DNA of 64,000 nucleotides from Nageia nagi (Eukaryota > Plantae > Pinophyta), in assembly GCA_050084985.1 (NCBI GenBank), contig JBITNC010000001.1, positions 18,786,001-18,850,000 of the forward strand, given 5' to 3'. Of this stretch, positions 1-24,236 are shown piece after piece (position 1 is the first letter of the stretch; the number at the start of each line of letters is the position of its first letter). Both the position numbers and the translations under genes were made by a program. The notes under the pieces were generated by a model. That model was not told the DNA's origin, did no database searches, and saw only the letters and a program-made list of their open reading frames with translations.

Positions 1-280
1 GTTTAGGGTTTAAGATGTAAGGTTTAGGGTTTAGAGTTTAGGATGTAGGGTTTAGGGATTAGGATACAAGGTTTAAGGTTTAGAATTTAGGGTTTAAGGT
101 TTAGGGTTAAATATTTAGGGTTCAAGGTTGAATGCACTAGATTAAATTAGCTAAGGTTTAAGATTTAAGGTTTAGGGTTTAGGATGTAAGGTTTAGTGAT
201 TATGATTTAGGGTTTAAGGTTTAAGGTATAGGGTTAAATATTAAAGGTTTAGGGTTAAATATTGAGGGTTTAAGATTTGA
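1..280 (+). repeat. Degenerate telomere-like tract (TTTAGGG/TTTAAGG), G-rich on +
   Basis: Many GGTTTAGGGTTT and GGTTTAAGGTTT units read directly; heavily degenerate, so interstitial rather than a true telomere. Confidence 0.9.
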
Positions 281-1039
281 ACAACCTATATGTTTAATTA
301 AGAAAAATATAATATTTTTTTTACAACTTTACAAATATACATCAAATTATCTGTATGTCTAATTACTTTATCACACAATACGATGTGATTATTTTTTTTA
401 CAACTTCACAAATTGATTAAATCTTATTAATGTGAGTGATGTGAAAACTTTTTTTAAAATATTTAATTTTTCTAAAATGTATACTACTAAGGTGTTAAAA
501 TAAGGTAGACTAGTAAAACTATAACATGGGTTTACTATATCTTGCCAACGAGTCACATAATGGTATATTAGAAGTGGTCATTACAACTTTGCCTTCACTA
601 TCAACAATTTAACCCTTGCCTAACTGATGTGAGCTCCAAGGCCAATATGGTGGCTAAAAGAATTTCGAGGGCTAAGTCTCAACATGGTGACTATATGTGT
701 TCCCATTTTGCAATGGGACACAGGGAATGCCATCGAGCAAGTAGTTAATGGCTTACTGAGAGTATCAACCCTTAATGATGTAGCCAATGGACTAAATAGT
801 CCATTGGTGTCGCCCATGTAACTCTTATATCCCTTATTTATAGTCGTTCGATGGAAAGTAATGACTCATATTCTAAGGGAAGATTACCTTGGAAATCAAA
901 TCCAAGTGTAGCATGCTCTATGGCTCAATAATTATGGTGATGGGAACTTAAGAAAATTAGAATCAATGGTCATCATCACCTCTAACTTATTTATTTTCAT
1001 TTTAAAGGCATCATGCATATGCATCTAAAAAATTAAATA

Positions 1040-2165
1040 ACTATATTAGCATTGCACTAGCATTAACATCGCATTAACAGTAACATCACATTAACTATAT
1101 TAACATAACATTAACATCACATTATCTACATTAGCATGGTATTTATAACATTGCATTATCTATAATAGCATGGTATTTATAACATCATATTAACATTAAC
1201 ATTGTATTAACTATATTAGCATGGCATTAATATTGCATTAACACTAACATCACAATTACTATATCAACATAGCATTAACATAATATTAACATCGCATTAT
1301 CTATATTAGCATGGCATCAACATCGCATCAACACTAACATAACATTAACTATATTAATATAGCATTAACATAACAAGTAACATTGTGTTAACACTAACAT
1401 AACATTAACTATATTAACATTGCATTAACTATATTAATATGGAATTAACATAGCATTACATTACCATCAAAATAACATGAACATAACATAAACATTGTAT
1501 TGCATTAAAATTGACATAGCATCAACATATCATTAACATTAACATAACCTTAACACTAGCATAACATTAATAGAGCATTCACATAACTTTAATGTTGCAT
1601 TAACATTGTAATCGGATTAAGGTTACTATTAAAATAACATGAATATAATATTAACATTGCATTACATCAACATTGATATAGCATTAATATTGATATTGAC
1701 ATATAGCAGTACCATATCTTGCCAACGAGTCACATAACGGTATATTGGAAGTGGTCATTACAACTTTGCCTTCACTATCAACAATCTAACCCTTGTCTAA
1801 CTAACGTGAGCTTCAAGCTTGATATGGTGGATATAACATTGACATAGCATTAACATTGACATTAACATATAGCTTTAATAGTGATATAACATTAACATTA
1901 AGATTGATGTATAATATTAACATTACCATAACATTAACATTGATATTAACATACCGACATTGATGTATAGCATTAATATTGACATAAAATTAACATTCAT
2001 ATAACATTAACATTAACATGATATTAATATATTAGAAACTTATAACATCAAATCTTAACCCACAAACCCTAACTTGACTCTTAACCCTAACATTATCATA
2101 ATATGTATTAACATAAGTATATTAACATTAACAAAGCATTAATGATATCATAATATTAAAATTAC
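1040..2165. repeat. Degenerate (AACATT/TAACAT)n low-complexity tandem tract
   Basis: Recurring acattaac and cattaacat units; grades into AACCCT-type units near 2055-2090. Confidence 0.85.
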
Positions 2166-3349
2166 ATTTTACTAATTTAATAGTATTTATAATTTAATTT
2201 TTTATGAATTAATTTAAATTATTTGCGTATTTTTAAAAAATATTTAATATTTTTAACAGTATATATTTATGAATTTAATATAATATTTTTAAAGTATTTT
2301 TTAAGTATTTTATGTATGTAATATTTTTTAAGTATTTTTATCTAAATACGATTTTAAATTATGTAGGTATATTTTTTACGTATTTTTAAAACTACTTAAT
2401 ATTTTTTAATTATATTTTTTAATGTAATATTTTTAAGTATGTTGAAATATTTTTTAAGCATTAATTTAGTAGTTTTTGAATTTTTTTATTTTTTTGGCAT
2501 GATGCATTGTTTGACGTATTGTTGCATCAAGCAATTGGTCAAGTTGAACATAGAATCATAAAAAAATAAAAGGGGTATACCCCACTAATCATTTTTTCAT
2601 TTGATTTTCATGAGAGGGACAAGGCAAAGAGTGTTTGCCATGGAAGAGGAGGACATAACAATCAGATTTGGATTAAATCTAACTATTTTTTGTTAGATCC
2701 AGGTCAAATTTGTCAAATTCACAGCCAGATTTAAAGGTAAGTATTGTAAATCTAATTTTTTACTTTCAAAATCATTTTTGCAATAAGTATTTAACTTTTT
2801 TTATAGAAATAGAATATTTTTGTATAGATTTGATATTTTTTATGCCAAAATAAAAACATACAAAAAAAAACCTTCAAAAATAATCAAAAATAAAAACCCT
2901 AGATAATATTTTTTACTAGAATTTGTTGAATTAAACCTAGAAAAATGAAAACCCTAGACTTTAGATAGATTTTTTTTACTAAAATTTGATGAATTAAACC
3001 TAGGGTTTGACAAAAACTAGGTTTTACAAAATTAAACAAATCAAAAAATTAGATTCTCAATTATTTATAAAATTTGTACATTAAGGTTTTAATTTTGTTG
3101 CAAAAAATTAACAAATTTTGAAAAATTCATAAAAAAAAATATATACAAAAACATACCAAAAATTCCTATAGCTCCTTTTTTGTTTTATCAAAATGACCAC
3201 ATGATCCCCATTTTTATAAATAACAAGTCAATAATTCATTTATAATTTAGAATTTTAAATTAAAATTTAACTTAATTTATAATATAATATACTTTTAAAT
3301 TTTAATTTATAATATAATACAATTTGAAATTTAATTTATAATACAATTT

Positions 3350-4980
3350 GAAGGGTTTAGGGGTTAGGGGTTTGGGTTTAATTAAGGGTTTGGGTTACAA
3401 GTTAGGGTTTTATTTTAACTTGGATTAAAATTTAATTTATAATATAATTTTAAATTTTAAACATATAATTTATTATTATTTTTAATTTTAAACATATAAT
3501 TTATTAAAAATTTAAATTATAAATTTTTAAAATATAATTCAAGTTAGGGGTTTAGGTTTAAGGGTAAGGGGTTTGGGTTAGGATTTAAAGGTTTGGGTTA
3601 GGATTATGAGTTAGAATTTTATTTTAACTTAACTTAAAATTTAAGGGTAAGGGTTAGGGTTTGAGGAATATGGTTAGGATTTAAGGGTTATGGTTAGGGT
3701 TTAAGGGTTAAGGTTTAAAATTATGGTTATGGTTAGGGTTATGGTTAGGATTTAGAGGTTGTACTTAAAGGTTATGGTTAAGGGTAAGCATTAAAGGTTT
3801 AGGTTATAGGTTAGGGTTTAAGGGTTAGGGGTTTGGGTTTAAGTTTAGGGTCAAAAATTAAGATTTTTGGAGTTATATATGGTTAGGATTTAGGGTTTTG
3901 GATTAAGGATTAAGGGTTTAGGGTAGCGTTTAATTAAGGGTTTGGGTTACAATTAGGAGTTAGAGTTTTATTTCAACTTAACTTAAAATTTAATTTATAA
4001 TATAATTTTAAATTTTAAACATATAATTTATTATTATTTTTATATTTTAAACATATAAATTATTAAAATTTTGGACTATAAATTTTAAAAATATAATTTA
4101 GGTTAGGGGTTTACGTTTCAGTGTTAGGTGTTTGGGTTAGGATTAGGAGTTAGGATTTTATTTTAACTTAACTTAAAATTTAATTTATAATATAATTTTT
4201 AATTTTAAACATATAAGTAACTATAAATTTAGATTTTTAATTTTAAACATACAATTTATTATAAATTTTTAAAATATAATTTAGGTTAGGGGTTTGGTTT
4301 TAAGGGTTAGGTGTTTGTGTTAGGGTTTAAGGGTTTAGGTTAGGGTTATGGGTTATAGTACTTTAAAGGTTAGGAGTTTGAGTTAGAGTTTAAGGAATAT
4401 GGCTAGGATTTAAGGTTATGGTTAGAATTTAAGGATTAAAGTTTAAAATTATGGTTATGGTTAGGATTTAAGGGTTGCAGTTAAAGGTTTTGGTTAGGGG
4501 TAAGCGTTAAAGGTTTAGGTTAGGGGTTAGGGTTTAAGGGTTTGGGGTTTGGGTTTAAGTTTAAGGTTAAGAATTAAGATTAGGAGTTAAAGTTTTATTT
4601 TAACTTAACTTAAAATTTAATTTATAATATAATTTGAAATTTTAAACATATAATTTATTATTATTTTTAAATTTTTAATTTTAAATATATAATTTGTAAA
4701 AAAAATTAAATTTTAAATTTTAAAAATATAATTTAGGTTTAAAGGTTAGGGGTTTAGGTTAAAGTTTAAATGTTTGGGTTAGGGTTAGGATTAGGATTTT
4801 ATTTTAACTTAACATAAAATTTAATTTATAATATAAGTTTAAATATATAAGTTATTATAAATTTTAATTTTTAATTTTAAACATATAATTTATTATAAAA
4901 ATTAAATTTTAAATTTTAAAAATATAATTTAGGTTAGAGGTTTAGGTTTAAGGGTTAGGGTTTAAGAGTTTAGGTTTAAA
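3350..4980 (+). repeat. Higher-order array alternating telomere-like TTAGGG/TTTAGGG blocks with an AT-only module
   Basis: The module 'ttttattttaacttaacttaaaatttaatttataatataa' recurs near 3407, 3617 (partial), 3966, 4156, 4593 and 4797, between GGGTTA-rich blocks. Confidence 0.9.
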
Positions 4981-5032
4981 TAGTTTTAAATTTTTTATAC
5001 TAATAATATTTTTTGTTATTATCTTTATTTAG

Positions 5033-6600
5033 TGATTATCTTGACCGATGATAGGAGAGGAAAGAATCCAAAACTTTCAAAGACAATTGCAAGCAAGAAT
5101 GGTTTTGTAAATATTTATTTATGAATGTGATTTGTTCATTTTTTATTTAATAATATTCATTTCAAAAGAAAAATTAACTTTATTTTTTTATCTTTTTTAC
5201 ATAGTAAGGTAGTGGCCAAATTATATAAAATGGCCACACAATGAATGGAAATGAGTGAGATTGATAGAGAAATCAATAAACAAATGGGCATTGGGCTTTC
5301 AAGTATTGGGCCTTTTGGGCCTGCTACTGACGTTGATCGATTATCATTGGTGGGCTCATCACTGAATGGTAAAATTATTTGATTTATTAATTTAAAAAAA
5401 TTGATTGAAGTTACCTTTTATTAACTAAATGTTACATTCAATAAAGATAATCTAAGTAATGTTGTAATTGTAGATGTACATTTAGTTAATAAGAAAATTG
5501 TATTTGCAATATGCAAGGGCACCAATGATATTGAGATTAAGGTGGATGAAAAGGATGTTGTTATTAAAGATCATAATGGTAAGAATTGATTTTAAAAATT
5601 ATACATTTATATATTTATTTTGGAATATATTAATTTACTAATATTATTAAATTTTCTTTAGGGCATTTTTTTATGACACTTTCTAGAAATGTATTTTCCA
5701 CCAACTTGATCCTACAATAGATCTCGAGTGGAAAAAATAAAATGAAGTAGGTTTATATATAATTTGTTATACTTAATTTTATAAATTATAAAGTATACTT
5801 AATTTTTTAATTCATTTTCTAAAAATTTATGTATTTTGCAGCATAATAAAGAGTGATAGATATCTTGAAAAAAGAATTTGGTGATGCATGGAATCCAAAA
5901 TGGACAAGAATTTAAATTGGAGGAGAGATAAAATTAGGAATAAAATAAATAAACTTCCTAAAAATCAATGTAGAGGAAGTAGGCTTGCAAATGTTGACAA
6001 AAAGGTGTGGAAGAACTTGATGAAGAAAGTGGAGGAGGAAACACATAGAGAATCCATTGCTGAACCATCATAGTTCGAAAAAGTTGTGCATGCCCAAGAC
6101 AACATATCTTCCATGACATATACCTATAAGTCAGGCAAATAGGGAAAAGTAGGGATTGAATCAAGATATGTAAGTATATTTAATTATTTATTTAATATTT
6201 TATACATGAATGGTTATATAATTAAAATATTATTTAATTAAATATGTATTTGTGTAGTATGATAAATATGGTAGGTATCCTTCAAAAGATGAAGTAAAAT
6301 TTGCCCTTAAAATGGTTTTCAAGCACTAGTCTTTAAGATAGCATCCAAGACTATAAGTAATATTTAAATATTTTTTAATTAATTATATTATTTTGATATT
6401 GATGCATAAAGTTTTTAGTTTTACTTATTTACTAATATTTAGTTAATTATTCTTTTCAAGGTGAGGAGGATCAATCGGAGGGTGGTTGAGATGAGGATGA
6501 ACAGGAGGGTGATCAGGAGGGGTTACAAATTACCATAATGGATGAAGATGATGAGGAGAGAGATGATGAGTACACTAGGCATGGTCATGATAGTGAATAA
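5033..6600 (+). pseudogene. Decayed multi-exon gene of CACTA-1 (probable TnpA/Ptta-like accessory protein)
   Basis: AG/GT-bounded exons at ~5033-5101, 5205-5368, 5474-5578, 5662-5750, 5842-6169, 6258-6355 and 6461-6600, separated by ~80-110 nt AT-rich introns. Stops and frameshifts present; acidic last exon; lies next to a CACTA right end; homologous to 12285-13227. Confidence 0.7.
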
Positions 6601-6929
6601 CCCATTACCATGACTTTCTACTTCATGAGACATTTTTTGTCACCTGAGATTATATACATATGATTATTAATGTGTTAGATTATTTATACTTAATGTATTT
6701 TTAAGTTTTATTTTTATTATGCTTATTTTTAATGCTTATATGTTTAAATTTTAATTTCTTTACTTTTAATATATTATAATTTAATTTTACATTATTGTAT
6801 GGATTTAGAATGTATTAAAAAATGAAATAAAATTTGAATGTATATATATTACTTTTAATGTATTTTGATTGTATTAAACACAAAAAATGGTAATAATAAA
6901 CTATTTTTTTTATTTTTTTAAATGATATC

Positions 6930-7420
6930 AAAATTGATGCCTTAAGCATCCAACATTTGACTCCTACCATGATTCCTAATGCATCAAAATTTTGACCAAA
7001 CTTGACTCCAAATGCAACAAATTCTTAACTCGTAATGCATCAACACATCGACGTTTTATGAGTCATAATTTTGACTCATAATGTATCGATAAATTGATGT
7101 TTTATGAGTCAAAATGTTGACTACTTAAGCATCAATACCTTGATATTTTATGAATCATAATTTTAACAATAAAAGCATCTACAAGTTGATGTTTATATGA
7201 GTCACACTTTTGACTCAAGTTACGTTTGCTTCTAGATATTGATATTTTAAGAGTCAACTGACTTGATGCATTTAGAGTTAAAAGATGATGCAATGTGCAT
7301 ACAATATAAGATGCATCAATTGATATTTCATAAAAAAAATGATGATGCTTAAAATGACACAGTGTTTGAAACTCCCCTTAGCATCAAGTTAGGAGTCAAT
7401 TTGATGACTAAAAAAAGGAA
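6930..7420. repeat. CACTA subterminal repeat region
   Basis: Dense TTGACTC/GAGTCA and GCATCAA/TTGATG motifs in both orientations just inside the TIR. Confidence 0.8.
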
Positions 7421-7479
7421 AAAAAAAGACATAGGGGTTGACATATTGGAGGAAGCAAAATCCCTTAAATGTAGTAGTG

Positions 7480-10400
7480 CATATAATTTAGACTTAGAGG
7501 TGTTAACTGCTTGTCAAAGGTCATTTCATGTGTATTTAGGAGTCTTTTTATCATATGGATTTCTTGTATGGAAGGGCATGTAGCTAAGAGGGTGTTATCA
7601 GCAAACTATGAGTGGGTAATAGGTGGACAAAGATGGTTTAACTGAAGGCCTTTAATTCCACCTGTCTCCTAAAGATTTTGAATGTCTCTTCCTAAAGCTT
7701 TAGCCATAATGATAAATAAGTATGGTGGAGGGGGTCTCCCTACCTCAACCCTTTTGAACCTCTAAAAAAAGCCTTGTGTACTACCATTAATCAATATGGA
7801 GGAAGTAGAACCCTAAATTAAGGTTGAGATCTATTGTATCCAACACTCATCAAAGCCAAACTTGCCCACAGTACTATTTAAATAAAACTCGATTTGCATC
7901 TTTTTTGCATCGAAATGCTTTGTTAATTTTTTCCCATTTTTCTGATGCAATTTTCGATGCAAACTATCATGCCAAAATTTGCGTTAGATTTTGCATCATT
8001 TTTGGAGCACTTTTTGTGTCATTTTTTACATCCTTAAAGCCACTTTTTCCATCCTTAAAGCCACTTTTTGCATCATTTTTTATGTTATTTTTTAGAATTT
8101 GCATCGATTTTTACATTAGAATTTCATTATTTACGTCAATTTATGCATCAAATTTTCATAATTTGCATCAATTTTTAAAATAAAATATAATAAAAATATA
8201 GATATTTTAATTTTATGCGATTTAAAAAAAATGGGCTCAAAACAAGGTTCGGATCAAAAGTTACGACCTCTGTAAGGTACATTATTTTTATTAGGTCTTT
8301 GGGGCAATGCCATAAGTCCATTAAACCAGTTCAAGAATGGAGTTAGTGGTTTAGGTTTTAAAAATTTTAATTTATTATATATTATTTTCTTGAATAATGC
8401 AGTAAGACTTTTAATATTATTTTCCATTTCTTATTTCCTACTTCTTTGTTAGCCTTCGAAGGAGTTTTCTTTTCTGCACTATGGGCTTATTCTCTTTTTT
8501 CTTTTCTGCAATTATGGATTTTTTTTTTCCGTGGGCTCATTCTCTATGGGCTTCTTCTCTACCTTGGGCACCAAGCTACGATCGAAACTTGAAAACTAAG
8601 GAAGGAAAAAAATAGCTAAAGTGTATGAAATGTAAGGATTATAGGGAGGGTTTGTTGATATATATAGATAGGAGAGGGTATTTGGCTATTAGGTAATCAC
8701 TTTTGGTACGGATGGAGGACAAAATGAATATAAGCCATCAATTGGTTGATTGATGAATAGGTAAAATATGTTTTATATTTTTATTAGTGAAATGCGATGC
8801 AAAGTTTACATCGAAATTTATGTTAGAATTTACATCGAAAAAAATGAAAAAATGGAAAAAAAAATAAAACGATGCATGTTGATGCAAGAGGATGCAAATT
8901 AATGTTGATTTTCATTTTTCATGTTTTAAGATGCAAAAGAGATGCAAATTCCATTATATGTTGCAGGAACCTTCAATTAACCCTATCAAATGCTTTCTTC
9001 ATATCAAAGTTTGAGGGCCTTTATTCTTGTTTAAAGATAAGGAGTGAATTAGTTCATGAATTAGAACTACTCCATCCATTAGTTGCCTATTTTCTCATTA
9101 AAGATTATGTATTAGATCATAGTTTTGAGATGACTAACAGCAACCTTCCTAAAATTTATTTTGAATTGAAGAACTCCTAAACTACTCCTACTATTTCAAA
9201 CTTAAGTAAGTGCCAAAAATGCTGATAGAAGAACCCCAAATCTCTTCATTTGGAAGACTACCTTCTCAACTTCTTTATCTAAGATCGGGACTACTAATAT
9301 TGCATTTTGATTTAAACTTAAAAGGGGGGAATAAGATTCTCAAGTATACTTGTGCATCTTCTCTATCTATCTCTTCGTCTGTTAGTAGATTTTTAAAAAA
9401 GGAGATGATGTGTTCATCTATATCTTCCGATTTGGATAAAACTTGACCAGAGGGAGTGTTCAGATTTAAAATTTTGTTTTTTCCCTATGCAATCATAGTG
9501 TATATGTGAAATAATTTATTATTCTTTTCTCCATCCTTAAGCCATTAAACATGTGATTTTTGTTTCCAAAAAATTCCTCTTTAAGATAAACCTCATCCAG
9601 TTTTCTTACCAAGGACAATTCTTGTTCTTGAAGAGCGTCATCATAGCCAACTTGGAGTTTGGTCTCTATCAGTGCTAATTCCTGTTCCAAAGCATATTTT
9701 GTATCTAAGAGTAAACTAAAAGAGCTTTTATTCCATATCTTCATCTTGGATTTAAGCTTGCTTAGTTTGGTAGCAAATTGGTACACAAGTGAGCCATATA
9801 CATAGGATTCTTCACTCCACCATTGTTCATCCAGCTTGAAAAATGTAGGATGAGAGAGCCACATTCTGTTGAATCTAAATGGGAAGCCTCTGCTTTTAGT
9901 TGGGTTGTCTAAGGTAAGGGCAATGGGTGAATGATCAGACCATAGAAGAAATCGATCCAGCTTCTCCAAAATTTTGTATTCTACTTTTTGTCGATTAGAC
10001 CATGTGAATCTACCATGAGTACAAAATGGCTCTAAGAGCTGGTTAACCTCTATGAATTCATTGAAGTGGTTCATGTTAACATCTAAACTTCTTACTCCCC
10101 CCATCTTCTCATCAAGGTTTATGATAATATTAAAATCACTTCCCACGATGCAAGAAATATCGTTGTTTGCTGCCAACTAAATTTTGATTTGGAACCAACA
10201 TTCTTGCTTACTCCTAATGGTTTGAGGGCCATAAACATTTAATAAAATAAAATTATTACCTGTTGAAAGGCATCTAGTCTGAACTACCACCTAAGAGTTA
10301 GTAGAGTAATCCAGAGAGCATGTGATCTTGGAATCATCCCAAAGGATTGCTAAACCACCAGACTTCCCATTGGAGTCCTTAGCAATGCACGAGCATTTAT

Positions 10401-12010
10401 ACCAAAAAAAAATTATAAAACTTTGCCATGTCAACCGCTGGTATTTTAGTTTCCTACAGAAAAAGAACTATGGGTAAAATTGAGCCAATCATAGCTTTAA
10501 CCTTCCTCATTTTCATGGGAATATGAAGACCCCTGGTGTTCCATGAGGTGGAAGACCCCTGGTGTTCCATGAGGTGACTAAAATTGGGAAACTTCATATT
10601 GTTTGGAGCCCAATAGCTCATCAATTTGAGGTTGACTTCCATCCTCTATGTTTTCCATTGCTTCCTAGATCAACTATTCCCGATTTTCCTACGACCTGGG
10701 CCTTTTATCCTGGGAAAACCTGTATTGGTGATCTTAAGTTTGTTGTTCATTTGTTTGATGGGTTATCCTCTAAAGGCATTCTCTTGAAGGTCTTTCCTAC
10801 TTTTGAGGCTAAGAGAGCTCTAGGGTATATGATCTATATTTTGGATCTAGGAATCCGCCATGTTTTGATCTATTTCTTGAAGAGGCGGATCTTGCCGAGT
10901 AGGGGAATCATTGGTCTCCATTATGTTAATGGTGGTAGGTTGTGGTCTAGTTATGGCTAGGATTTGAGGTTGGGTTGGCATTCATTCTGAGGGATCGGGG
11001 AATTGCTAGCAGGACTCTGCTCTTTTCCATTCGGATCTAGGCTATACAGAATTTGAAAAGAGTTTTGATCTCTAACATCTACAATGTTATGAACAGTATT
11101 AGGTTGCTTACCTATTTGGGATTTTCACTTGGGTATTTGGAAACCATTCTCTGGGCAGCCACTAGTTGGATCTAAGGCTCAGCATGTGGGCAAGATCTGG
11201 CTAAATGGCCATATTCAGAGCATACACGATGCCTGAAGGGAACGTTCTTGTAATCCACTCTTGGGTCCAAGTTAACCCTTCATCTGATATTTCAATTTGG
11301 ACCTTACAGTGCAGTGGGAAATTTAGGTTGATCTGAATATAGATTCGAGTATAGGTAGCAGACCTCAACTCCCTGGTATTTTTGAAGGTACTTATATAGT
11401 TTCCTAATGATACACCTCTTGCTTCAAACACATCATCATTCCAATGTTCAAAGATAAATCTATGAGTCTGATCCACACCAGGGCCATGGAGGGGTTTTCT
11501 TCGTTTTTTTTAACCTTGTATGCCAGGGTTTCATGAATACGTTGGCATCTACACAAAACCATGGACCGCCTTCAAATGCAAAGCCTTTATCCAGTTTCGT
11601 AATAAACAAGGCTATGAAATACCCATTGGAAAGATGGGTAATGCTCACTTCGCCCTTCAGTCCCTTCTCACCTTTAGATTCCCAGTTATGGAGAACCCAA
11701 GTCTCTATGGCGTATGGAGCTAACCTTGCTTCAAGGAATTTGCAGATTAAGGCATGTGTTTCTAGCATGTGGATGCCATCATGAACCTTTTCGCTTCTAA
11801 CCATTACTAATGGTGTTTCCGTAGTAGCTTGGAAACATCCATTTTCATTTTTTTGGGGGTCCTCCTTTGTTCATCTAACTCTTCAAAATTGGCCTCGTTC
11901 AGTAGCTGGTTTAGACCCATTAGGTGAGGATTTCCTCAAGACATCATGAAAAGAAATATTTAGAGGGACCCCCTGAAGTCGACGCCATGGCTAGCCTCTT
12001 CCTGCTCAAA
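7480..12010 (-). mobile_element. L1-clade LINE, decayed, interrupted by two insertions
   Basis: ORF1 from ATG ~11988: DUF4283-like segment (ORF 11460-11804) and zinc knuckle CSEYGHLARSC near 11200. ORF2 endonuclease motifs SWNTRGL, GSDFN, LDRFL, SDHSPI, FRFNRMW. RT motifs DMKKAFDRVN (~8990), GLR*GDP (~7740) and *FADNTLL (~7600). Confidence 0.92.
7876..8962. mobile_element. ~1.09-kb non-autonomous element with subterminal inverted repeats, inserted in the LINE RT
   Basis: Splits the RT motif W-x-F-L..xxKFGF. A 20-bp inverted repeat (7892-7911 vs 8930-8949) matches 19/20. GCATC/GATGC motifs cluster at both ends. Confidence 0.75.
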
Positions 12011-12284
12011 ATAGCGTTATAGTATTTTCAGTCATTTCGTTCGAGGATAAAACAACGGTCGTATTCAATACTTAAAGCAAGTGTTGAAAACAACTACTAA
12101 AATATTAACAAAAAAGACATGGATAAGGTGTGAGGTATTAGGTCCTCTCATGCAGCCCATGTACCAACTCACCGCTGCCTCCAACCACTCCACGTGGTAA
12201 TTTTTTCTATGAATTAAATTTTAAAAAATATTTTAAATATTATTATTTTTTCTTTTTTTATTATTTTTTCTTAACGATTAATCA

Positions 12285-13227
12285 TAAATATGGTAAAGGT
12301 GACATGAGTATTGAATCGAGACCCCATACATTCCTCACATCGATCAATTCACTTGGAGTTGAGATAAGAGTGAAACTTGATGGTGAAGTAATTAAGGATG
12401 TGTAGTAGGTACGTAAAATCAATACATTTATGTTTGAAAATCAATACATTTAAAATATTTACAATATAATAATTTACTAATATTTTCAAATATTTTACAG
12501 GGAGAGCTTTTTATGAACATCTAAGGAAGTATTGCACTCAATTTTTTTGCAAATACCTTAGATCTTGATTGGAAATCACAAGATGAGAGCAATACATTTT
12601 TTTATATATTATTAATAATAATATTTTGAGAAAATTTTATTATCCATATAAAAATCTTATTTTCCAAAAAAATAAAAATTAATTTTTATAATTGTGTATT
12701 TTGTAGGTAAAAGAAAATTTATAAATGTTCTCAAAAAAGATTTTGGAGATGGGTTAAGTGCAAATTTTGCACTACAAAGGGCAAGAAGGATTGTGAATTA
12801 GAAGAGAGACCAATATAAATGCATCATAAAGTCTCTTGACGTTGTTGAATGTACCCATTACCACAGAAAGGCTAACAGTGATCCAAAAGTGTGGAAATAG
12901 TTGGTGGCGAAAGTGAATGCAACTGAGGAGCATCATGCATCTGCACAAGAACCCTCACAATAGCAAAAGCTTCATGAACATTTGGATTTTTCATATCATT
13001 ATTCGTAGGTAAGCATTGCATGGGTTCTGCAAGAAACCAAGGGTTGGATGCCATGTTTGTGAGTATACTAATTTAATGAATTCTTTAATGTTTATACTTC
13101 ACATAATTAAATATTTATTATTTTTTTGTAGTTATCCAAATATGATCGACTTCCAATAAAGAAGGAACGCAAATATGGACTTAAAGAAGGTTTTGCAAAG
13201 CTTGTTGAAAAGGTGGATGTTGAAATG
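12285..13227 (+). pseudogene. Decayed TnpA-like gene of CACTA-2 (four recognisable exons)
   Basis: Exons at ~12285-12408, 12501-12590, 12707-13058 and 13132-13227. Peptides VEIRVKLDGEVIKD, LDLDWKSQDE, VLKKDFGD, ANSDPKVWK..AQEPS and KYDRLPIKKERKYGLK align with CACTA-1 IEIKVDEKDVVIKD, IDLEWKK*NE, ILKKEFGD, ANVDKKVWK..IAEPS and KYGRYPSKDEVKFALK. Confidence 0.75.
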
Positions 13228-15183
13228 GTAAGCAAGTAGGAAAACCTTATGTGCTTTAAATTAATTATTTAAATTTAATTTTTAAATGTCAATACAAGTT
13301 TTAAATATTTTACTTAGTGTTAAAAATATTGACTTAGGGATTAAGCGTTAATAGTTTTACAAGGGTTCAAGGTTTAGGGTTTATGGGTTTAGGTTTAAGG
13401 GCTTATGGGTTTTAGGGTATAGGATTTTAAGGGGTTAGGATATATGGTTTTTAGGATTTAAGGGTTTAGGGTTTTGACTAAGGTTTTTCAGGGTTTAAGA
13501 TTTACGAGTTTAAGGTTTAAGGGTTTATGATTTTATAAATTTAATTTAGGGTTTTAAGGTATAAGGTTTAGAGTTTGAAGGATTAAAGGTTTAGAGTTTA
13601 GGGTTATAGGGTTTAGGTTTTATAGTTTAAGGGCTTATGGGTTTTAAGGTTTATAGTTTTAGGAGTTTAAGGGTTTAAGGTTTAAGGTTTAGGATTAAAG
13701 AGTTTAATGTTTTACGATTTTAGGACTTAGGGTTTTAAGGTTTAGGGTTTATAGTTTAAGGGCTTAAGGATTTTAAGGTTTAAGGTTTACAATTTAAGGG
13801 CTTAACTATTTTAGGGTTTAGGAGCTTAGGGTTTAGGTCTTACAATTTTTAGGGTTTAAGGTTTAGTGTTAAACTTAAACTGATATAAATATGAATTAGT
13901 TTCTTAAAAATATGACTTAGCTTAGTAAATATTTGACATAAGTTAGGCTTAAGTTAGTAAACATTTAACTTATATTACAATTGCATTAGACTTAAGTTAA
14001 TAAAAATTTAAATTAGTTTCTTAAAATTATCACTTAGGTTAGTAAAAAATAACTAAAAAGATAATGAAAACCAATCTTAGAAGACTATGTCCATCAAACT
14101 TTGCCCAATGATGTTAACTACAATGCTAAGAACAAAAAATAAAACATAAAATTTTTCTCATAACTCAATTATTGATCGTCCCATACAATAATAATATTTA
14201 AAAAATATATGAGCTCATGATTATCATTAATTGTTAAATCATATAATACATTATACATGATTTTGTATCTAAATATATATTTTTGCATGTACACTAACTA
14301 TAACCCTAAACGCTTACCACTAACACTAACCTTAACTCTAACCCCTAAATCGTAACCATAACCATAATACTTTAACTCAAATAAAACTTATTTGATTAGT
14401 AAAAATTGACTTAGAGTAGATTTATTAAATTTAAGGGTTTAAGATTTTAGGGTTTAGGGGTTTATAATTTAGGGTTTTACAATTTTAAGGTTCAAGATTG
14501 TAACATTTAAAGTTTAGGGTTCAAGGGCTTAAGGGTTTTAGGGTTTAGGGTATAAGGTTTTTAAGGTTTAGGGGTTAGGGTATAAGGTTTTTAAAGTTTA
14601 ATGTTTTAAGGTTTTAGGGTTTTATCTAGGGTTTTTAGGGTTTATGAGTTTAAGGTTTAAGGGTTTTATGATTTTACAATTTTAAGTTTTAAGATTTAGA
14701 GTTCAAGGGTTTAAAGTTTAAGGTTATAGGGTTTGTGGTTATAAGGTTTATGGTTTAAGGGAGTAAGGATTTTAGGGTCAAGGATTTTAGAAGTTTAAGG
14801 TTTAGGGTTTAAACATGTAGGGTTTTACAATTTTAAGGTTCAGGCTTTTAAGGTTTAAGGTTTATAGTTTAAAGTCTTAAGGGTTTAGGGTTTTAAGAGT
14901 TTAAGGTTTAGGGTTTATATTTTAAGGGTATAAGTGTTTTAGGGTTAAGGAGGTTAGGGTTTAAGGGTTTAGGGTTTTATCATTTTTAGGTTTAATTAAG
15001 GTTTAAGGTTAGACTTAAATTTAATAAAAATATGAATTAGTTTCTTCAAAATATGACTTAGGTTAGTAAAATAGAATTGAAAATCAATCGTAAAAGACTA
15101 TGTCCATCAACCTTTGATCGATGATATTAACTACTATGCCAAGAACAACAAATAAAAAATAAAATTCCCACTCAACTCAATTA

Positions 15184-16917
15184 TGAAGGATTTGAACTAG
15201 ATCTAAACAAATCCTCTAGGACCTTAGACTAGGAAACTCAAGTGTACACAAGATAACACAATCACTCAAGATAACACATCAATATAATGTGGTTCCTCCC
15301 TCCTTGGGAGTACATCCACAACTAGTTCTCTTATTCTCAAATCTATGTCTCTCTTACAACTATTCTCTAGCTCTCTCCTACACAACCAAGTAGAGTAATC
15401 TTACTCAAAACTTAGATATGTTTACATGAGGAGAGGCCCTCTATTTATAGGTTGAGAGCACCTCCCTAACCTTCCTTTAACCCAAGGGTAAGGTTAGGGT
15501 TACATTAAATTTATCACCAAACTTCAACCTACCAACTACCCACTTTGGTAAAGTCAAAGTCTACATATTAAAGAATTCTATTAATCACTTAAGGTATCTA
15601 CATACCTTTAAGTGATTAATTGAATTTACAAGGAGTCTAGATATTCACAATATTTCATTACAAATTCTAACACTCCCCCTTAATGCAATATTGGGATAGA
15701 GCGTAGAAGAGAGAAGAGAGAGAGTAAGAGAGAGTTCTCCTCCATAGAGATACAAGTGGAGATGAGAACTTTTACATATTTTGAGAATCTTTTTGAGAAC
15801 TAGTATGAGACTCACTACATTACCATTTGATAAAAATGGTTTACAATACAATCATTAACCACAACTGGTTTCACTGTACATAGTAGTCGATCAACTTTAA
15901 GCTGACATGTGAGTCTCCATGAGCTTGCTTTCACAAGGTGAGTAACCTGCATTTCTAAAGAAGATCCTGCATGCTACAAGCAACTCATGAACAAAATCAG
16001 TTAGATGCATCATATATTCAAATAAGAGAATCAAATAATGCCATCTTATAAATAACTGATCAATGGTGCACTATAAGCCATCACAGAGATGCCAAGCCAT
16101 CACTCATAGTCACCTGTTGTATATAGACATGTGTTGATTTTAAAAATAGAGCATAAAATTGTACAACGAGTTTCTCACACAGAGCAAACTCACCACGGAG
16201 GTATAGAATGTACAACAAGTTCGTCACGCAGAGCGAACTTACCACGGAGGTATATTAATTACATGCTCAAATTTTGTACAATAAGTTTCTCACGCAGAGC
16301 AAACTCACCACGGAGGTATAAAATGTACAACAAGTTTGTCACGCAGAGCAAACTTACCACTAAGGTATAAAATAATCAACACTCTATAACAACAATTGTA
16401 CAACAAGTTTGTCACGCAGAGCAAGCTTACCACGGAGGTAACTAGATCTAAACAAATCCTCTAGGACCTTAGACTAGGAAACTCAAGTGTACACAAGATA
16501 ACACAATCACTCAAGATAACACATCAATATAATGTGGTTCCTCCCTCCTTGGGAGTACATCCACAACTAGTTCTCATATTCTCAAATCTATGTCTCTCTT
16601 ACAACTATTCTCTAGCTCTCTCCTACACAACCAAGTAGAGTAATCTTACTCAAAACTTAGATATGTTTACATGAGAAGAGGCCCTCTATTTATAGGTTGA
16701 GAGCACCTCCCTAACCTTCCTTTAACCCAAGGGTAAGGTTAGGGTTACATTAAATTTATCACCAAACTTCAACCTACCAACTACCCACTTTGGTAAAGTC
16801 AAAGTCTACATATTAAAGAATTCTATTAATCACTTAAGGTATCTACATACCTTTAAGTGATTAATTGAATTTACAAGGAGTCTAGATATTCACAATATTT
16901 CATTACAAATTCTAACA
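15184..16917 (-). mobile_element. Young non-autonomous LTR retrotransposon (1.73 kb, no gag-pol)
   Basis: LTRs 15184-15672 and 16440-16917 show 2 mismatches over 478 bp by eye. TG..CA outer ends; PPT AAGGGGGAG on - at 15673; TATA box CTATAAATAG on -; perfect TSD AATTA (15179-15183 / 16918-16922). Confidence 0.95.
16160..16440. repeat. Five ~45-bp repeats inside the LTR element
   Basis: TGTACAACAAGTTTGTCACGCAGAGCAAACTTACCACGGAGGTA-like unit near 16160, 16210, 16275, 16324 and 16397. Confidence 0.9.
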
Positions 16918-18261
16918 AATTATTGATTGCCCCATGCAATAACAATATTAAAAAATATATGAGCTCACAATTATCATTAATTGTTAAATCATATAATACA
17001 TTGTACATGATTCCATATCTAAATATATATTTGTGCATGCACACTAAGCCCAACCTTAAATGCTTACCCCTAACCCTTACCACTAACCTTAACCCTAACC
17101 TTAACACCTAAATCGTAACCATAACCCTAAATATTCCTAACCCTAACCCTTAACTATTTACATTAACCTTAACCCTTAACCCCTTATCCTAACTGCTTAC
17201 CTTAAACCTAATTGTAATCCCTAACCATTAAAACCTAACCCCTTAACCCTAACCCCTAAATTTGACTTAGGTCAATAAAATTTTGACTTATGTTAGACCT
17301 AGGTTGCTAAAATTTTAACTTAGGTTAGACTTACTAGGTTACTAAAAAATTGACTTAGATTATATTTATTAAGTTACGAAAAATTCTTAGATTATATTTA
17401 TTAAGTTACGAAAAATTTGAGGCAGGTTAGTAAAAATCAAGGTTAAATAATTTGATACTATTTTTTTCCTTTTAATATACACTAATAAGATTAAATCTTT
17501 GATTGGTAATAGTTTTTGTGCTATTAATTAATTAGTTAATTATAATTTGAAATTCATGAAATGATTTTTAATTTATGATTGTTTACTAACATTTTTAATT
17601 ATGTTTTTAATGTGTTTAAAAATTATTTTGAGTTCCAAATTTTTGATTCCATTAAATTTAATAGTATTTAATTTATTTCAATTCAAATAAATTTTAATTC
17701 AACTAAGTTTATTTAATTCAATTAAATATAATCAATACATTAAATTCATTATAATGAATAAATTCATTTAAATATTCATTCAATTTAATATAAATTTTTT
17801 CAAAAATAATATCATTGAAAAAATTGCAAAAAAATAAAATTATTTTTTTAAATTCATTTTTTTTTCAATTCCAACTTCTTGTTTAACGTTACTACCAACG
17901 TCAATACCAACATTATACCTAATGGAAAATACAAAAAAAAAAAAATTTAATTATATTTCTTGATGATATAACTGATGGAAATAGTGACGATAACATAATG
18001 TTTTGCTAGAAATCCTAACAGTATATATGATGTCTCTGACAATATGCATGACATATATTGTGATGGTATTTTATTGATTTTATGATGAAATGTCCAACGT
18101 TGTGTGTGATGTATAATGATGAAATGCTTGACAAAAATTATTTCAATGGTTTTGATAGACACGTTAACCTCAACCATGTCATGAGGGGTTTAAATTTTAA
18201 AAAGTAAAATACAAAGGGCCCTGATGTTATTTCTAATGATTGACCCCTTTTTCTTGTAGTG

Positions 18262-19330
18262 TATTAAATGAATTACATTAGGAAACTTTACAATAATGCA
18301 TTATACATTCCAATAATGCCTCATCAAAATGTAATCTCATGAATTGTAATGTTTGCAGGATATGCAAAACATAATTTTTCCAAAAAAAACTTGCAAACTT
18401 TTATGTAGATGCAAAATGTGGGAGAATACAAACTCTACAACCTTTACCATCATTTTTCCAACATGCCACCAACACGAGAGCTCAAGAAGGAGGTATGGAA
18501 ATCCATCAAAGAGTAGTTCGAAATGGTTTTTCATCGAATGTTATGATTATGAATGCCCTTATTAACATGTATGTAAAATATGGAAGAATACAAACTAGGT
18601 TTTTTGTAGAACATTATGGTTGCAAATTCCATGATAAACAATTGATTATTTTAGTTGTGAAATCAAGCTAGTGTTTTCATCGAACATTGTATTTATGAAT
18701 GCCATGATAAATAAGTACGCAAAACAACATAGGAATAAGGTACAAATAACTTACTTTTGATGGAGAAAATTGTAGACTAAAATCCTTAGCCACTATTTCT
18801 CATTTGGAAAAAAGACTAAACCTGTAACCACCATTGCTCATTTAGAAATTGCAAACTGGCATGTATGCAAAATGTAGAAGAATACAAGCTAAGGTTTCAT
18901 TGAATGTTGTGGAAGAAACAACCTAGACCAACACAGTTTCATCGAATGTTGTGATTTTGAATGCAAGATATAATTTTTTTGGCTTGTAACTTTTCATCAA
19001 ACATTTTGGTTGTAAAATTACGAAAATATGTTTTGAGCGACTGTTGTTCTACATGTATGCAACATGTAAAAAAATAAATAATGCTTGATAATTATTTAAG
19101 AAGATGCATGGTGCAAACACAGTTTCATAGACTAGAATGATCACAAGATATACAAATTATAGAAATGAATTTTAATCGAATGTTATGGTTATGAAATCAT
19201 GCTAGGGTTTTTATCAAACATTGTAGTTGTGAATGCCATGATAAACAATCAAATGTTGTGGTTGTGAATGCCATGATAACCAAGTATGGAAAATAAAATA
19301 ACAACTGGGTATAAATAACTTATTTGAAAT
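18262..19330 (+). pseudogene. PLS-class PPR pseudogene with an amplified motif segment
   Basis: Translates to MPHQNVIS*IVMFAGYAK, NSTTFTIIFPTC and SNVMIMNALINMYVKYGRI, matching the PPR consensus VVSWNAMIAGYAQ and NALIDMYAKCG; many stops and indels. Confidence 0.8.
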
Positions 19331-21775: not shown

Positions 21776-22570
21776 ATGGAGCCGGTATGGAAGATTGCTT
21801 ACCTCCTGGAGCCAGCGTCGCTTGCGCTTATTTGCACTGCAGTTCTTGTTGTTTTTGCATCAGCTCAGAGAGCTCTCAATTATGAGAAAGAAATGGAACG
21901 TAACCGGGATTTTTCAGAATCTTCCATTACGCTTGACAGTTCTCAGGCTCTGATGATTCCTATTGCGAGCTCGTGTAGTCTTCTGTTGATGTTTTATTTA
22001 TTTGCATCCATGTCACATCTTGTAACCGCTTTTACTGCAGTGGCTTCAGCATCATCCCTTGCATTTTGTATCTCCCCTTATATTTTTTACATAAATTCCC
22101 AGCTTGGGTTGGTGGATCCTGTTACCCGGTGCTGTTGTCGAACCATGACTAGACTACAGGGAATTCTGGCATTGGTGAGTTGTACATTGGTGATTGCATG
22201 GCTTGTATCTGGACACTGGATACTAAACAACCTTTTGGGAATTTGCATATGCATTGCTTTTGTTAGTCATGTTCGGTTGCCAAACATAAAAATATGCTCA
22301 TTGCTTCTAGTCTGCTTGTTCGTGTATGACATTTTCTGGGTTTTCTTTTCGGAGCGGTTTTTTGGAGCCAATGTAATGGTATCAGTTGCAACGCAACAAG
22401 CTTCAAATCCAGTTCACACGGTTGTCAATACACTTAATCTTCCAGGTTTGCAATCGATAACAAAGAAGTTGGAGCTTCCTGTTAAACTAGTCTTCCCAAG
22501 AAATTTGCTAGGTGGAATGGTGCCTGGAAACACTGCAGTGGAATTCATGATGTTGGGCCTTGGTGACATG
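21776..22570 (+). CDS. SPPL1: Signal peptide peptidase-like 1, coding exon 1 (265 codons)
   Basis: Multi-TM ORF with catalytic YD (YDIFWVF) and GLGD motifs; GT donor after GGTGACATG. Confidence 0.95.
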
Positions 22571-24236
22571 GTTTGTATTCCTTTCTTAGGGTTTTAACTT
22601 TGCACATTGTTGTGCCTAAGATGATGAATTTTTGTACTGATTTCTGTGCTATCGTTATCCATTCTGCCGTTTTGAAATTCCAAGTTTATGCATCACAAAG
22701 GATGATTTCGATGGGTCATACATTGTGTAATTTGCATATCTTTCAATAAATCTCTAAACTTTGTATGAATTTCTTTATGTTCATAGATTTGACGAATTTC
22801 TCAACAAATTAAAGTTGTTTTTACAGAAATGAGACAAGTATTCATTTTCATTACTGAATGTTTTTTGAGACAAGTATTTGCTGGCAGTTAATGTCTCAAC
22901 TAGTGGGAAATTGGGAAACTTAATACCATAATAAAAATCTTGGTTTACCATAAAATTTTATCAGAGGGCATACTTTTAAATCTTATAATATTTTGATGCC
23001 AATCTAATCTTTGCCAATTCTGTAGCATCAACTGTTTACTGCTTGTTGATATCCAGCAATACCATATCTCAACACTTAAAGTTGGAACGTTGCTTGCATA
23101 ACTGCAATTGAGATAATAGAATGCAAATGCAATTATGTAACTGATGCATCGCCTACATTTTTTAGGCTTCTCCACGTCCCATATTTGCATATTTAGATGT
23201 TTAAAGTTAAGAGTCAATAGATGCTTGAGATAGAACTTATATCTAAGGAGCTAGGTATTAAGTAATCTAAATCCTTCTTTCAGCTCAAATTTATTTTGTT
23301 TTCAAAATATTCTAGCATGTGAAACTTAGTATGGATTACATAAGTTTTTACTGGCTAGGATAATCTTTGTTGATTAAGGTTTGTGAGACACATAAGCTGA
23401 ATTAATATAAGCATCCTAGGATATGCAACACATAATTTCACTGTGATATTTCATAGTCTTCCATTCATTTTGTTCTCAGTTTTAAGGGTTTTTCCTCTTA
23501 AAACAAGTGCTTGAAAATGATTTTGTAAAATAATAATCCTTTTTTATTATATGTAACGTAGTATATGTCAGTATATGTCAATTTATTGTTGAGCATTAAT
23601 ATCTTTTTGACTTAGGTAATGGTAACTCACCTTGCTTGCGAAAACATATTTTCCTTATTATAACTACATATGCATTAGTCCTTATTCTTTAATTTGAAAT
23701 GTAACAAATATTCATGTATTAGAGAAGTTCATAGAGATTCATAGCTACTGTGAAACTTCTGTGCTTTTGCATGAATCTGTATAGAGAAAAATCTTGTTCA
23801 TTTGATGAGCTATATATGCTTCTTATAGTGTTTTTGGGTATTAGAACAGTTTTTAGTTAGCTTGTGTGAACAATCTACATGTCTTAAGTGGTGGCCCTTC
23901 GTTATCCATTTTTATTGTTTAGGTTTCTCTTCTTTTGGATTTTGGTTGCATTCAGTAATTTTGAAATTGCCAACATTACCCTCTATGGAAATTGTTTATA
24001 GATAAATGGTCATCTATGTCATAATTAATTTGTTTGACAATACTTTTATTTGTCATGTGTGCCTGAGTTCTCATGGTGGTTTGTTTATTTTGAAAAGGTT
24101 TTGCAATTAGCAAATTGGGAAAATTTTTATGAAAATATCATCTTGAAAGTGGTTTGATCACCAGCCTGGTTGTTGGGAGTATCGTTTGACAATTTTCAGT
24201 TAATACTTATTGGATATGTGATGAATTAAAATGCAG

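Follow-up and report, generated by a model that had tools for sequence, protein, structure and literature searches.

The question raised by a 64,000-nucleotide stretch of Nageia nagi DNA (assembly GCA_050084985.1, contig JBITNC010000001.1, positions 18,786,001 to 18,850,000 of the forward strand) is how kilobase-sized arrays of a telomere-like motif come to lie within transposon sequence. The whole stretch is called the window below, and positions are counted from its first letter. A first-pass annotation made from the sequence had noted that the long tracts fall inside two divergent elements with CACTA-type termini at 7479 (element 1) and 18261 (element 2), and had proposed a transposon lineage that disperses interstitial telomeric repeats. 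We consider it probable that the arrays are internal tandem-repeat modules of an old CACTA-type lineage, which were transposed, remodelled and decayed, and that element 2 carries a related set.

Telomere-like arrays and the elements that hold them

All telomere-like tracts that Tandem Repeats Finder and counts of the motif revealed in the window fall in 1-18261. The exact motif TTTAGGG was counted 43 times on the + strand and 6 times on the - strand, and motif-dense bins were confined to 1-280, 3350-4980 and 13335-15010 on the G strand and to 17040-17262 on the C strand. Two further small C-strand tracts, absent from the first-pass annotation, were found at 2040-2095 and 14290-14360. The fit of the tracts was scored by wrap-around alignment to cyclic TTTAGGG and compared with composition-matched shuffles, which the long tracts exceeded at z = 15-27 and the small pair at z = 5.4 and 3.9. 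The motif bins and z-scores bear out the earlier claim that the long tracts all lie within the two CACTA-ended elements. All are degenerate, with ~77-80% of aligned bases in agreement with TTTAGGG, and G>A changes accounted for 216 of the 501 mismatches. Deamination of methylated cytosine on the C-rich strand would be expected to leave such an excess in a genome as AT-rich as this one, with a GC content of 0.15-0.43. Perfect telobox 8-mers numbered 36 in the ~3.9 kb of tracts, compared with 6 on both strands of the other 45.7 kb. With a host-type motif, a non-terminal position and flanks of transposon and long interspersed nuclear element (LINE) DNA, the arrays are interstitial telomeric repeats (ITRs).

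The arrays are composite tandem repeats with units of 7, 16, 21, 23, ~200 and ~1050 bp, and not pure runs of a 7-mer. In element 1, the G-strand array T0 (1-280, + strand, z = 19) combines a base period of 7 bp with a higher-order unit of 21 bp and is cut off at the start of the window; the short C-strand tract at 2040-2095 (- strand), which gave the weak z of 3.9, stands head-to-head with it. A larger composite array (3350-4980, + strand), recognized from its repeat units, the shuffle test and counterparts in the metagenome copies L001 and L005 described below, occupies intron 1 of the element-1 gene. It consists of 5-7 tandem units of ~190-560 bp each, in which a G-rich telomere-like part is joined to a fixed AT-rich part. 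In element 2, a ~1.05-kb cassette is present as a tandem duplicate (13335-14420 and 14430-17420), and its two copies agree at 83-85% in their unique parts. The order within the cassette is a G array of ~550 bp, GACTTAGGTTAGTAA-type repeats, ~250 bp of unique sequence and a C array. Copy 1 thereby holds the G-strand array G1 (13335-13870, + strand, 7-8-bp base period, z = 27) and the C-strand tract C1 (14290-14360, - strand), and copy 2 holds G2 (14430-15010, + strand, z = 19) and C2 (17040-17262, - strand). Copy 2 is split by a later insertion resembling a long terminal repeat (LTR) retrotransposon or a terminal-repeat retrotransposon in miniature (TRIM) (15184-16917, + strand). Its terminal direct repeats are ~480 bp long and agree at 99% over 300 nt, and it has produced the 5-bp target duplication AATTA; the edges of the insertion were set by comparison with the uninterrupted copy at 14160-14180. 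The insertion has a TG...CA-type outline, contains a 115-bp tandem repeat at 16155-16440 and is much younger than its host cassette.

CACTA-type ends, each in - strand orientation, were read at 7462-7479 and at 18246-18261. Element 1 closes with a 3' subterminal region and terminus (6900-7479, + strand); on the - strand, its last bases (7462-7479) read CACTACTACATTTAAGGG. Subterminal short repeats, as in CACTA/En-Spm elements, are present as a 46-bp unit at 7020-7217 in the window and as a 23-bp unit repeated 16 times in L001 (7787-8154). Neither of these repeats by the terminus is telomere-like, and the telomere-like arrays sit at least 2.5 kb from the visible terminus of element 1. The same terminal bases close the window copy and the metagenome loci L001/L002, L006/L008 and L007/L009, and the flanks beyond them are unrelated. 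Because four distinct copies stop at one base with unrelated flanks, sequence comparison identifies 7479 as a true transposon terminus and the copies as independent insertions. The terminus of element 2 (18246-18261, - strand) reads CACTACAAGAAAAAGG on the - strand, bases that we take to be those of the maize En/Spm terminal repeat. It is present in a single copy, and no clear tandem array was seen in element 2 near 18261. No 5' partner end for either terminus was found in the window or in the metagenome loci, so that each element is visible only from its interior to its 3' end. Elsewhere in the window, a search for terminal inverted repeats plus target duplications yielded no complete CACTA element to act as a control.

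Both elements had been said to encode the same decayed multi-exon protein, recognizable as paralogous mainly at the protein level. A colinear translated alignment of 5591-6358 with 12433-13233 confirmed this, with a score of 145 where shuffles gave 36.5 ± 5 (maximum 48), and at the nucleotide level only stretches of ~80-90 bp of the two gene regions could be aligned, at 72-75%. The splice landmarks at 2737, 5032 and 13228 also read as claimed. In element 1, a putative exon 1 (2590-2737, + strand) ends in a GT donor at 2737, and both sequence and donor are kept in L001 at ~3000-3140. Exons 2-8 of this multi-exon gene (5033-6600, + strand) are decayed and are 81-87% identical to L001, L003, L005, L006 and L007. 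The gene fragment of element 2 (12290-13228, + strand) is homologous to the element-1 exons at ~5475-6355; for the upstream exons and the acidic final exon of element 1, no match in element 2 rose above the null. From their order and orientation, and from one weak AT-rich match (6369-6456 with 17522-17608, 73%), we infer that this fragment and the terminus at 18261 belong to one element. Pfam gave no credible family for the stop-free pieces of both genes, for two short relatives (P0001 and P0002, see below) or for one L001 open reading frame (ORF), and no recognizable Myb or other DNA-binding domain in the encoded protein, each exon having been searched separately. Four TGGGCY-type (site-II-like) motifs are clustered at 5280-5345 in putative exon 3, ~300 bp downstream of the array. 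The cluster is partly kept in L001, L003, L004 and L005 and may be a coincidence in coding sequence.

Further copies of element 1

Relatives of element 1, together with it referred to as family 1, were sought with a 62-aa exon piece, which was compared by phmmer with 1.8 billion representatives. Only two short relatives matched, P0001 and P0002, from contigs of 774 and 908 bp. JGI metagenome contigs were then scanned with an alignment (A1) of these relatives and the pieces from the window; the scan gave 11 loci with an AT-rich composition like that of the window, or ~6 distinct loci after merging of near-identical pairs. The contigs (L001-L011; Ga0115846/48/51, Ga0181464/66/67 and Ga0068628/29/30) come from three metagenome sample sets with host-plant DNA, and identical contigs recur across samples (L001 = L002, L010 = L011). 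A search of sequencing runs returned low-share matches only, several of them in air metagenomes, which fits pollen, and none recorded as RNA. A protein scan of viral contigs gave no match.

The 9978-bp contig L001 follows window 1-7479 colinearly, with an identity of 77-79% by local blastn and 81-87% in the paired exon/intron comparison. The blastn segments pair L001 1034-2402 with window 1-1383, 2800-3568 with 2407-3214, 5751-7416 with 4976-6611, and 8179-8315 with 7343-7479. Arrays are present in L001 at both homologous positions (735-1336 and 3566-5600), and L005 carries a G-strand array (1-155) immediately before exon 2. The other contigs begin too near the gene to show the array site, and L010/L011 represent a 560-bp fragment of the element. 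Family members without tracts, which the first-pass annotation had named as evidence that would speak against its proposal, were not encountered among the three informative copies (window, L001 and L005), all of which carry arrays. Its assumption that the tract at 1-280 lies inside element 1 likewise gained support from the colinear segment L001 1034-1336. Because independent copies carry arrays at the same internal positions, the arrays are best read as part of the element and not as a local accident; as judged from these alignments, the arrays of family 1 belong to the element and move with it.

Other internal repeats of element 1 have counterparts in L001 as well. A TAACAT-type satellite (1030-2030, + strand) is kept in L001 at 2103-2640, and a ~120-bp direct repeat that lies before and inside this satellite (530-650 and 1710-1833) is matched at L001 1597-1719 and 2426-2534. 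Exon identity within family 1 (0.81-0.87) matches intron identity (0.82-0.89). With the two equal, decay of the copies was neutral and followed a burst whose master copy already bore arrays.

The arrays of L001 use other unit types at the positions homologous to those of element 1, namely a 16-mer, TTAGGGTTGTAAAAAA, in ~14 copies, a 21-mer of three heptads in ~16 copies, and a 23-mer, TTAGGGTTAATTTTTGTAAAAAA, in ~57 copies. Because other unit types fill the same positions, the arrays turn over far faster than the flanking DNA. The first 126 nt of L001 are a perfect inverted copy of L001 1334-1459, probably an assembly artefact of a k = 127 graph. A - strand ORF in L001 begins ~60 bp from the upstream array, which would put the arrays between divergent genes; this layout was not relied on, because the contig start is probably artefactual.

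Origin of the arrays

A shared block of non-telomeric sequence links the arrays of the two elements. The 12-mer GGTAAGCRTTWA, a non-telomeric variant, occurs 4 times in the window against 0.01 expected, with two sites in the intron array of element 1 (+ strand) and one in each C tract of element 2 (- strand). In alignment A2, it lies inside a 65-95-bp signature block, around GGTAAGCRTT, that is ~80% identical between the elements and includes other non-telomeric variants; in element 2, the block is carried by C1 and, at 17057, by C2. As this block is common to both elements, the arrays are not independent additions, and the sequences point to a relationship by descent or exchange and not to separate creation. 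The identity of ~80% is higher than the 72-75% of the best intron stretches, though not decisively so. A spaced-core test of the GACTTAGGTTAGTAAAA-type repeats of element 2 against the 16-mer of L001 gave 2 matches, a weak result equalled by 6 of 100 shuffles. The first-pass annotation had described the arrays as a lineage trait that was repeatedly gained or maintained. Of this description, heritability stands and the signature block fits maintenance or exchange; independent gain does not hold, and maintenance over many rounds is seen only when the two lineages are compared.

The events that we propose begin with a master copy of family 1, which would have borne arrays upstream of its + strand gene and within the first intron of that gene. 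Transposition would have copied these arrays to new loci, where slippage and unequal recombination may then have expanded, contracted and reshuffled them, and where methylation-driven G-to-A change would have decayed them. Element 2 would be a distant relative in which a head-to-head cassette of G array and C array, present as a tandem duplicate, came to lie in the last intron or the 3' region. Such a lineage would seed interstitial telomere-like loci genome-wide. In an active element, dense telobox-type motifs at non-coding regulatory positions could have served as platforms for host telomere-repeat-binding (TRB) Myb proteins, and binding of TRB-type host proteins to the arrays is plausible in view of the telobox density and by analogy with Arabidopsis. 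The chromatin camouflage suggested in the first-pass annotation would be one hypothetical outcome of such binding.

That CACTA elements were the host and not the source of the arrays, and that a distinct module, either mobile or prone to recombine (a satellite, gap-repair filler or a non-autonomous element), entered both elements secondarily, is an explanation that we regard as unlikely. It would account for a signature block that is ~80% identical in elements whose genes match only as protein, for the different gene positions at which the arrays lie in the two elements, and for the element-2 cassette, which is an insertion relative to the element-1 intron. The block's 80% is nonetheless no clear excess, since the best inter-element intron stretches also reach 72-75%, and neither termini of a nested element nor a target duplication was found at the cassette edges (13229-13335 and 17260-17520), where decay could hide them. 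The other 45.7 kb of the window holds no arrays outside the two elements, and the arrays of family 1, which travel with the element, were in place in its master copy. A chance co-location or an assembly artefact of common telomere-like microsatellites is scarcely credible and largely refuted. Conifer genomes are indeed rich in interstitial (TTTAGGG)n, with ~23,926 loci in loblolly pine (PMC4053751), but here every tract belongs to one of two related elements and the other 45.7 kb is free of them; in other assemblies, independent copies hold arrays at the same positions; and the signature block is common to both elements.

Healing of broken elements by telomerase, as suggested in the first-pass annotation, or repair of such elements from a telomere template is in our judgement very unlikely. 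Head-to-head pairs would result if both nascent 3' ends were extended inwards, and G arrays are indeed followed head-to-head by C arrays in both cassette copies, as T0 is by 2040-2095; the base period of 7-8 bp in T0, G1 and G2 is that of the seed-plant telomere unit, and the G>A excess is compatible with once-perfect arrays. A telomerase-made tract would, however, consist of a uniform single short unit free of fixed foreign spacers, whereas the units found here, up to the ~1050-bp cassette, are composite, and telomerase cannot yield units of 16, 21, 23 and ~200 bp with fixed non-telomeric spacers. Several copies inherit their arrays at fixed positions, the shared non-telomeric block speaks for common descent and not for repeated fresh synthesis, and the G and C arrays stand ~420 bp apart and are of very unequal length. 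At most one ancient founding event of this kind could be accommodated, and it would fit the head-to-head orientation. The further suggestion that the arrays are sites for the element's own TnpA-like protein, evolved to read telomere-like DNA, appears highly improbable. The short motifs are repeated in both orientations, as TnpA sites are, and the elements encode a lineage-specific second protein without a family match, but this protein has no recognizable Myb or other DNA-binding domain. The repeats at the location of En/Spm TnpA sites, just inside the terminus, are moreover not telomere-like, and the telomere-like arrays are those lying at least 2.5 kb away from the visible terminus.

Several observations weigh against our preferred explanation of array modules internal to a CACTA-type lineage. 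No transposase gene of the EnSpm DDE type was found in 1-18261 or in the metagenome loci, an absence that is compatible with membership, the 5' halves of both elements being out of view. Because no transposase is visible, the assignment to the CACTA superfamily is based on the termini and the subterminal repeats. Element 2 is known from one copy, one terminus and a gene match at the protein level, and exact terminus scans of metagenome and viral contigs found no second copy of it. For family 1 the informative copies number only three, and the additional ones come from a repeat family as assembled in short-read metagenomes and may be chimeric. Within the L001 arrays, G positions are the least conserved by per-position conservation and no protected core was detected; as the G positions are the least conserved, the dead copies give no sign of constraint on a core. 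A broader version of the proposal, in which an ancient gymnosperm CACTA lineage keeps telobox arrays as a functional chromatin or promoter module read by TRB proteins and is, through its bursts, also a major source of the interstitial loci of conifers, is put forward tentatively, and we regard it as doubtful.

Neighbouring DNA and comparison with known systems

Between the two elements lies a decayed L1-type LINE (7480-12195, - strand), which was recognized by translation of its reverse-transcriptase motifs, with domains assigned largely by eye. In the - strand translation of 7480-7866, plant L1 reverse-transcriptase motifs run right up to the terminus of element 1. The LINE also contains an endonuclease-like ORF at 9496-10176 and a sub-threshold match to DUF4283 at 11463-11870, and its 5' end abuts the gene fragment of element 2. 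Because the reverse-transcriptase gene is interrupted at the terminus of element 1, element 1 is a discrete insertion into that gene. Since element 1 lies in the LINE, and the 5' end of the LINE lies against the element-2 gene fragment, the order of arrival puts element 2 first, the LINE second and element 1 last. Sequence ahead of position 1 may hold the absent 5' part of element 2. No reverse-transcriptase remnant was found adjoining the telomere-like tracts. Short repeats of the TTTGCATC / GATGCAAA type, in clusters inverted to each other, flank a ~1.1-kb segment within the LINE (~7866-8965) and give it the look of a small non-autonomous DNA transposon. The LINE further contains a perfect 26-bp tandem duplication at 10525-10576. 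Beyond element 2, a 273-aa multi-pass membrane ORF (21776-22597) and PPR-like coding sequence (18400-19300) are presumably host genes or fragments of them.

Telomere motifs at numerous sites inside the chromosomes are a long-standing observation in conifers and other gymnosperms. A transposon lineage with arrays as cargo would be a concrete, testable source of the telomere motifs found inside conifer chromosomes, dispersed by transposition and not by chromosome fusions. In loblolly pine, the interstitial (TTTAGGG)n loci are left unexplained as to origin in the paper that describes them (PMC4053751). The arrays of the window share both the motif and the interstitial location with these conifer repeats, of which a transposon carrier would be one source, and array-carrying CACTA elements could partly explain why many telomere-like repeats lie far from chromosome ends. 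They would also offer a natural system in which to ask whether transposons use telobox-type motifs to engage host TRB proteins and Polycomb or to drive their own expression. In large plant genomes, elements of this kind will in addition confound tests of assembly completeness that rely on telomeres, as well as the interpretation of telomere signals in fluorescence in situ hybridization.

In Arabidopsis, ITR domains attract Polycomb repressive complex 2 (PRC2) upon loss of histone H1, and the ATREP18 units were stated by the authors not to be true transposons (10.1101/2020.11.28.402172). Arabidopsis ITR domains have further been reported to expand by block duplication, with ENSPM elements enriched among them (10.64898/2026.05.10.723265). 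The arrays described here resemble ATREP18, ITR-1R and ITR-4L in being degenerate arrays of the telomere motif with higher-order structure and dense teloboxes. They differ in that the ATREP18 arrays arise in place from centromeric satellites, with ENSPM elements among them, whereas here the arrays lie inside the transposon and travel with it.

[quoted passage not shown] Endonuclease-deficient Penelope-like retroelements of the Athena/Coprina type are likewise mobile elements joined to telomere repeats, but they are retroelements at chromosome ends with short terminal repeats, in contrast to the long internal arrays of a DNA transposon found here. In Caenorhabditis, Helitrons are associated with telomere-repeat tracts and represent a DNA transposon that carries the host motif to internal sites, although superfamily, host kingdom and array architecture are different.

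Our full-text literature searches found no paper describing CACTA elements with telomere-like arrays. Triticeae CACTA families are known to seed satellites. En/Spm itself shares with the elements of the window CACTA-type termini, seen here at the 3' end, and subterminal arrays of short repeats. A second gene with several exons and minisatellites in the interior that differ from copy to copy are also common to both; the difference is that the internal arrays described here use the telomere motif of the host and reach kilobase size.

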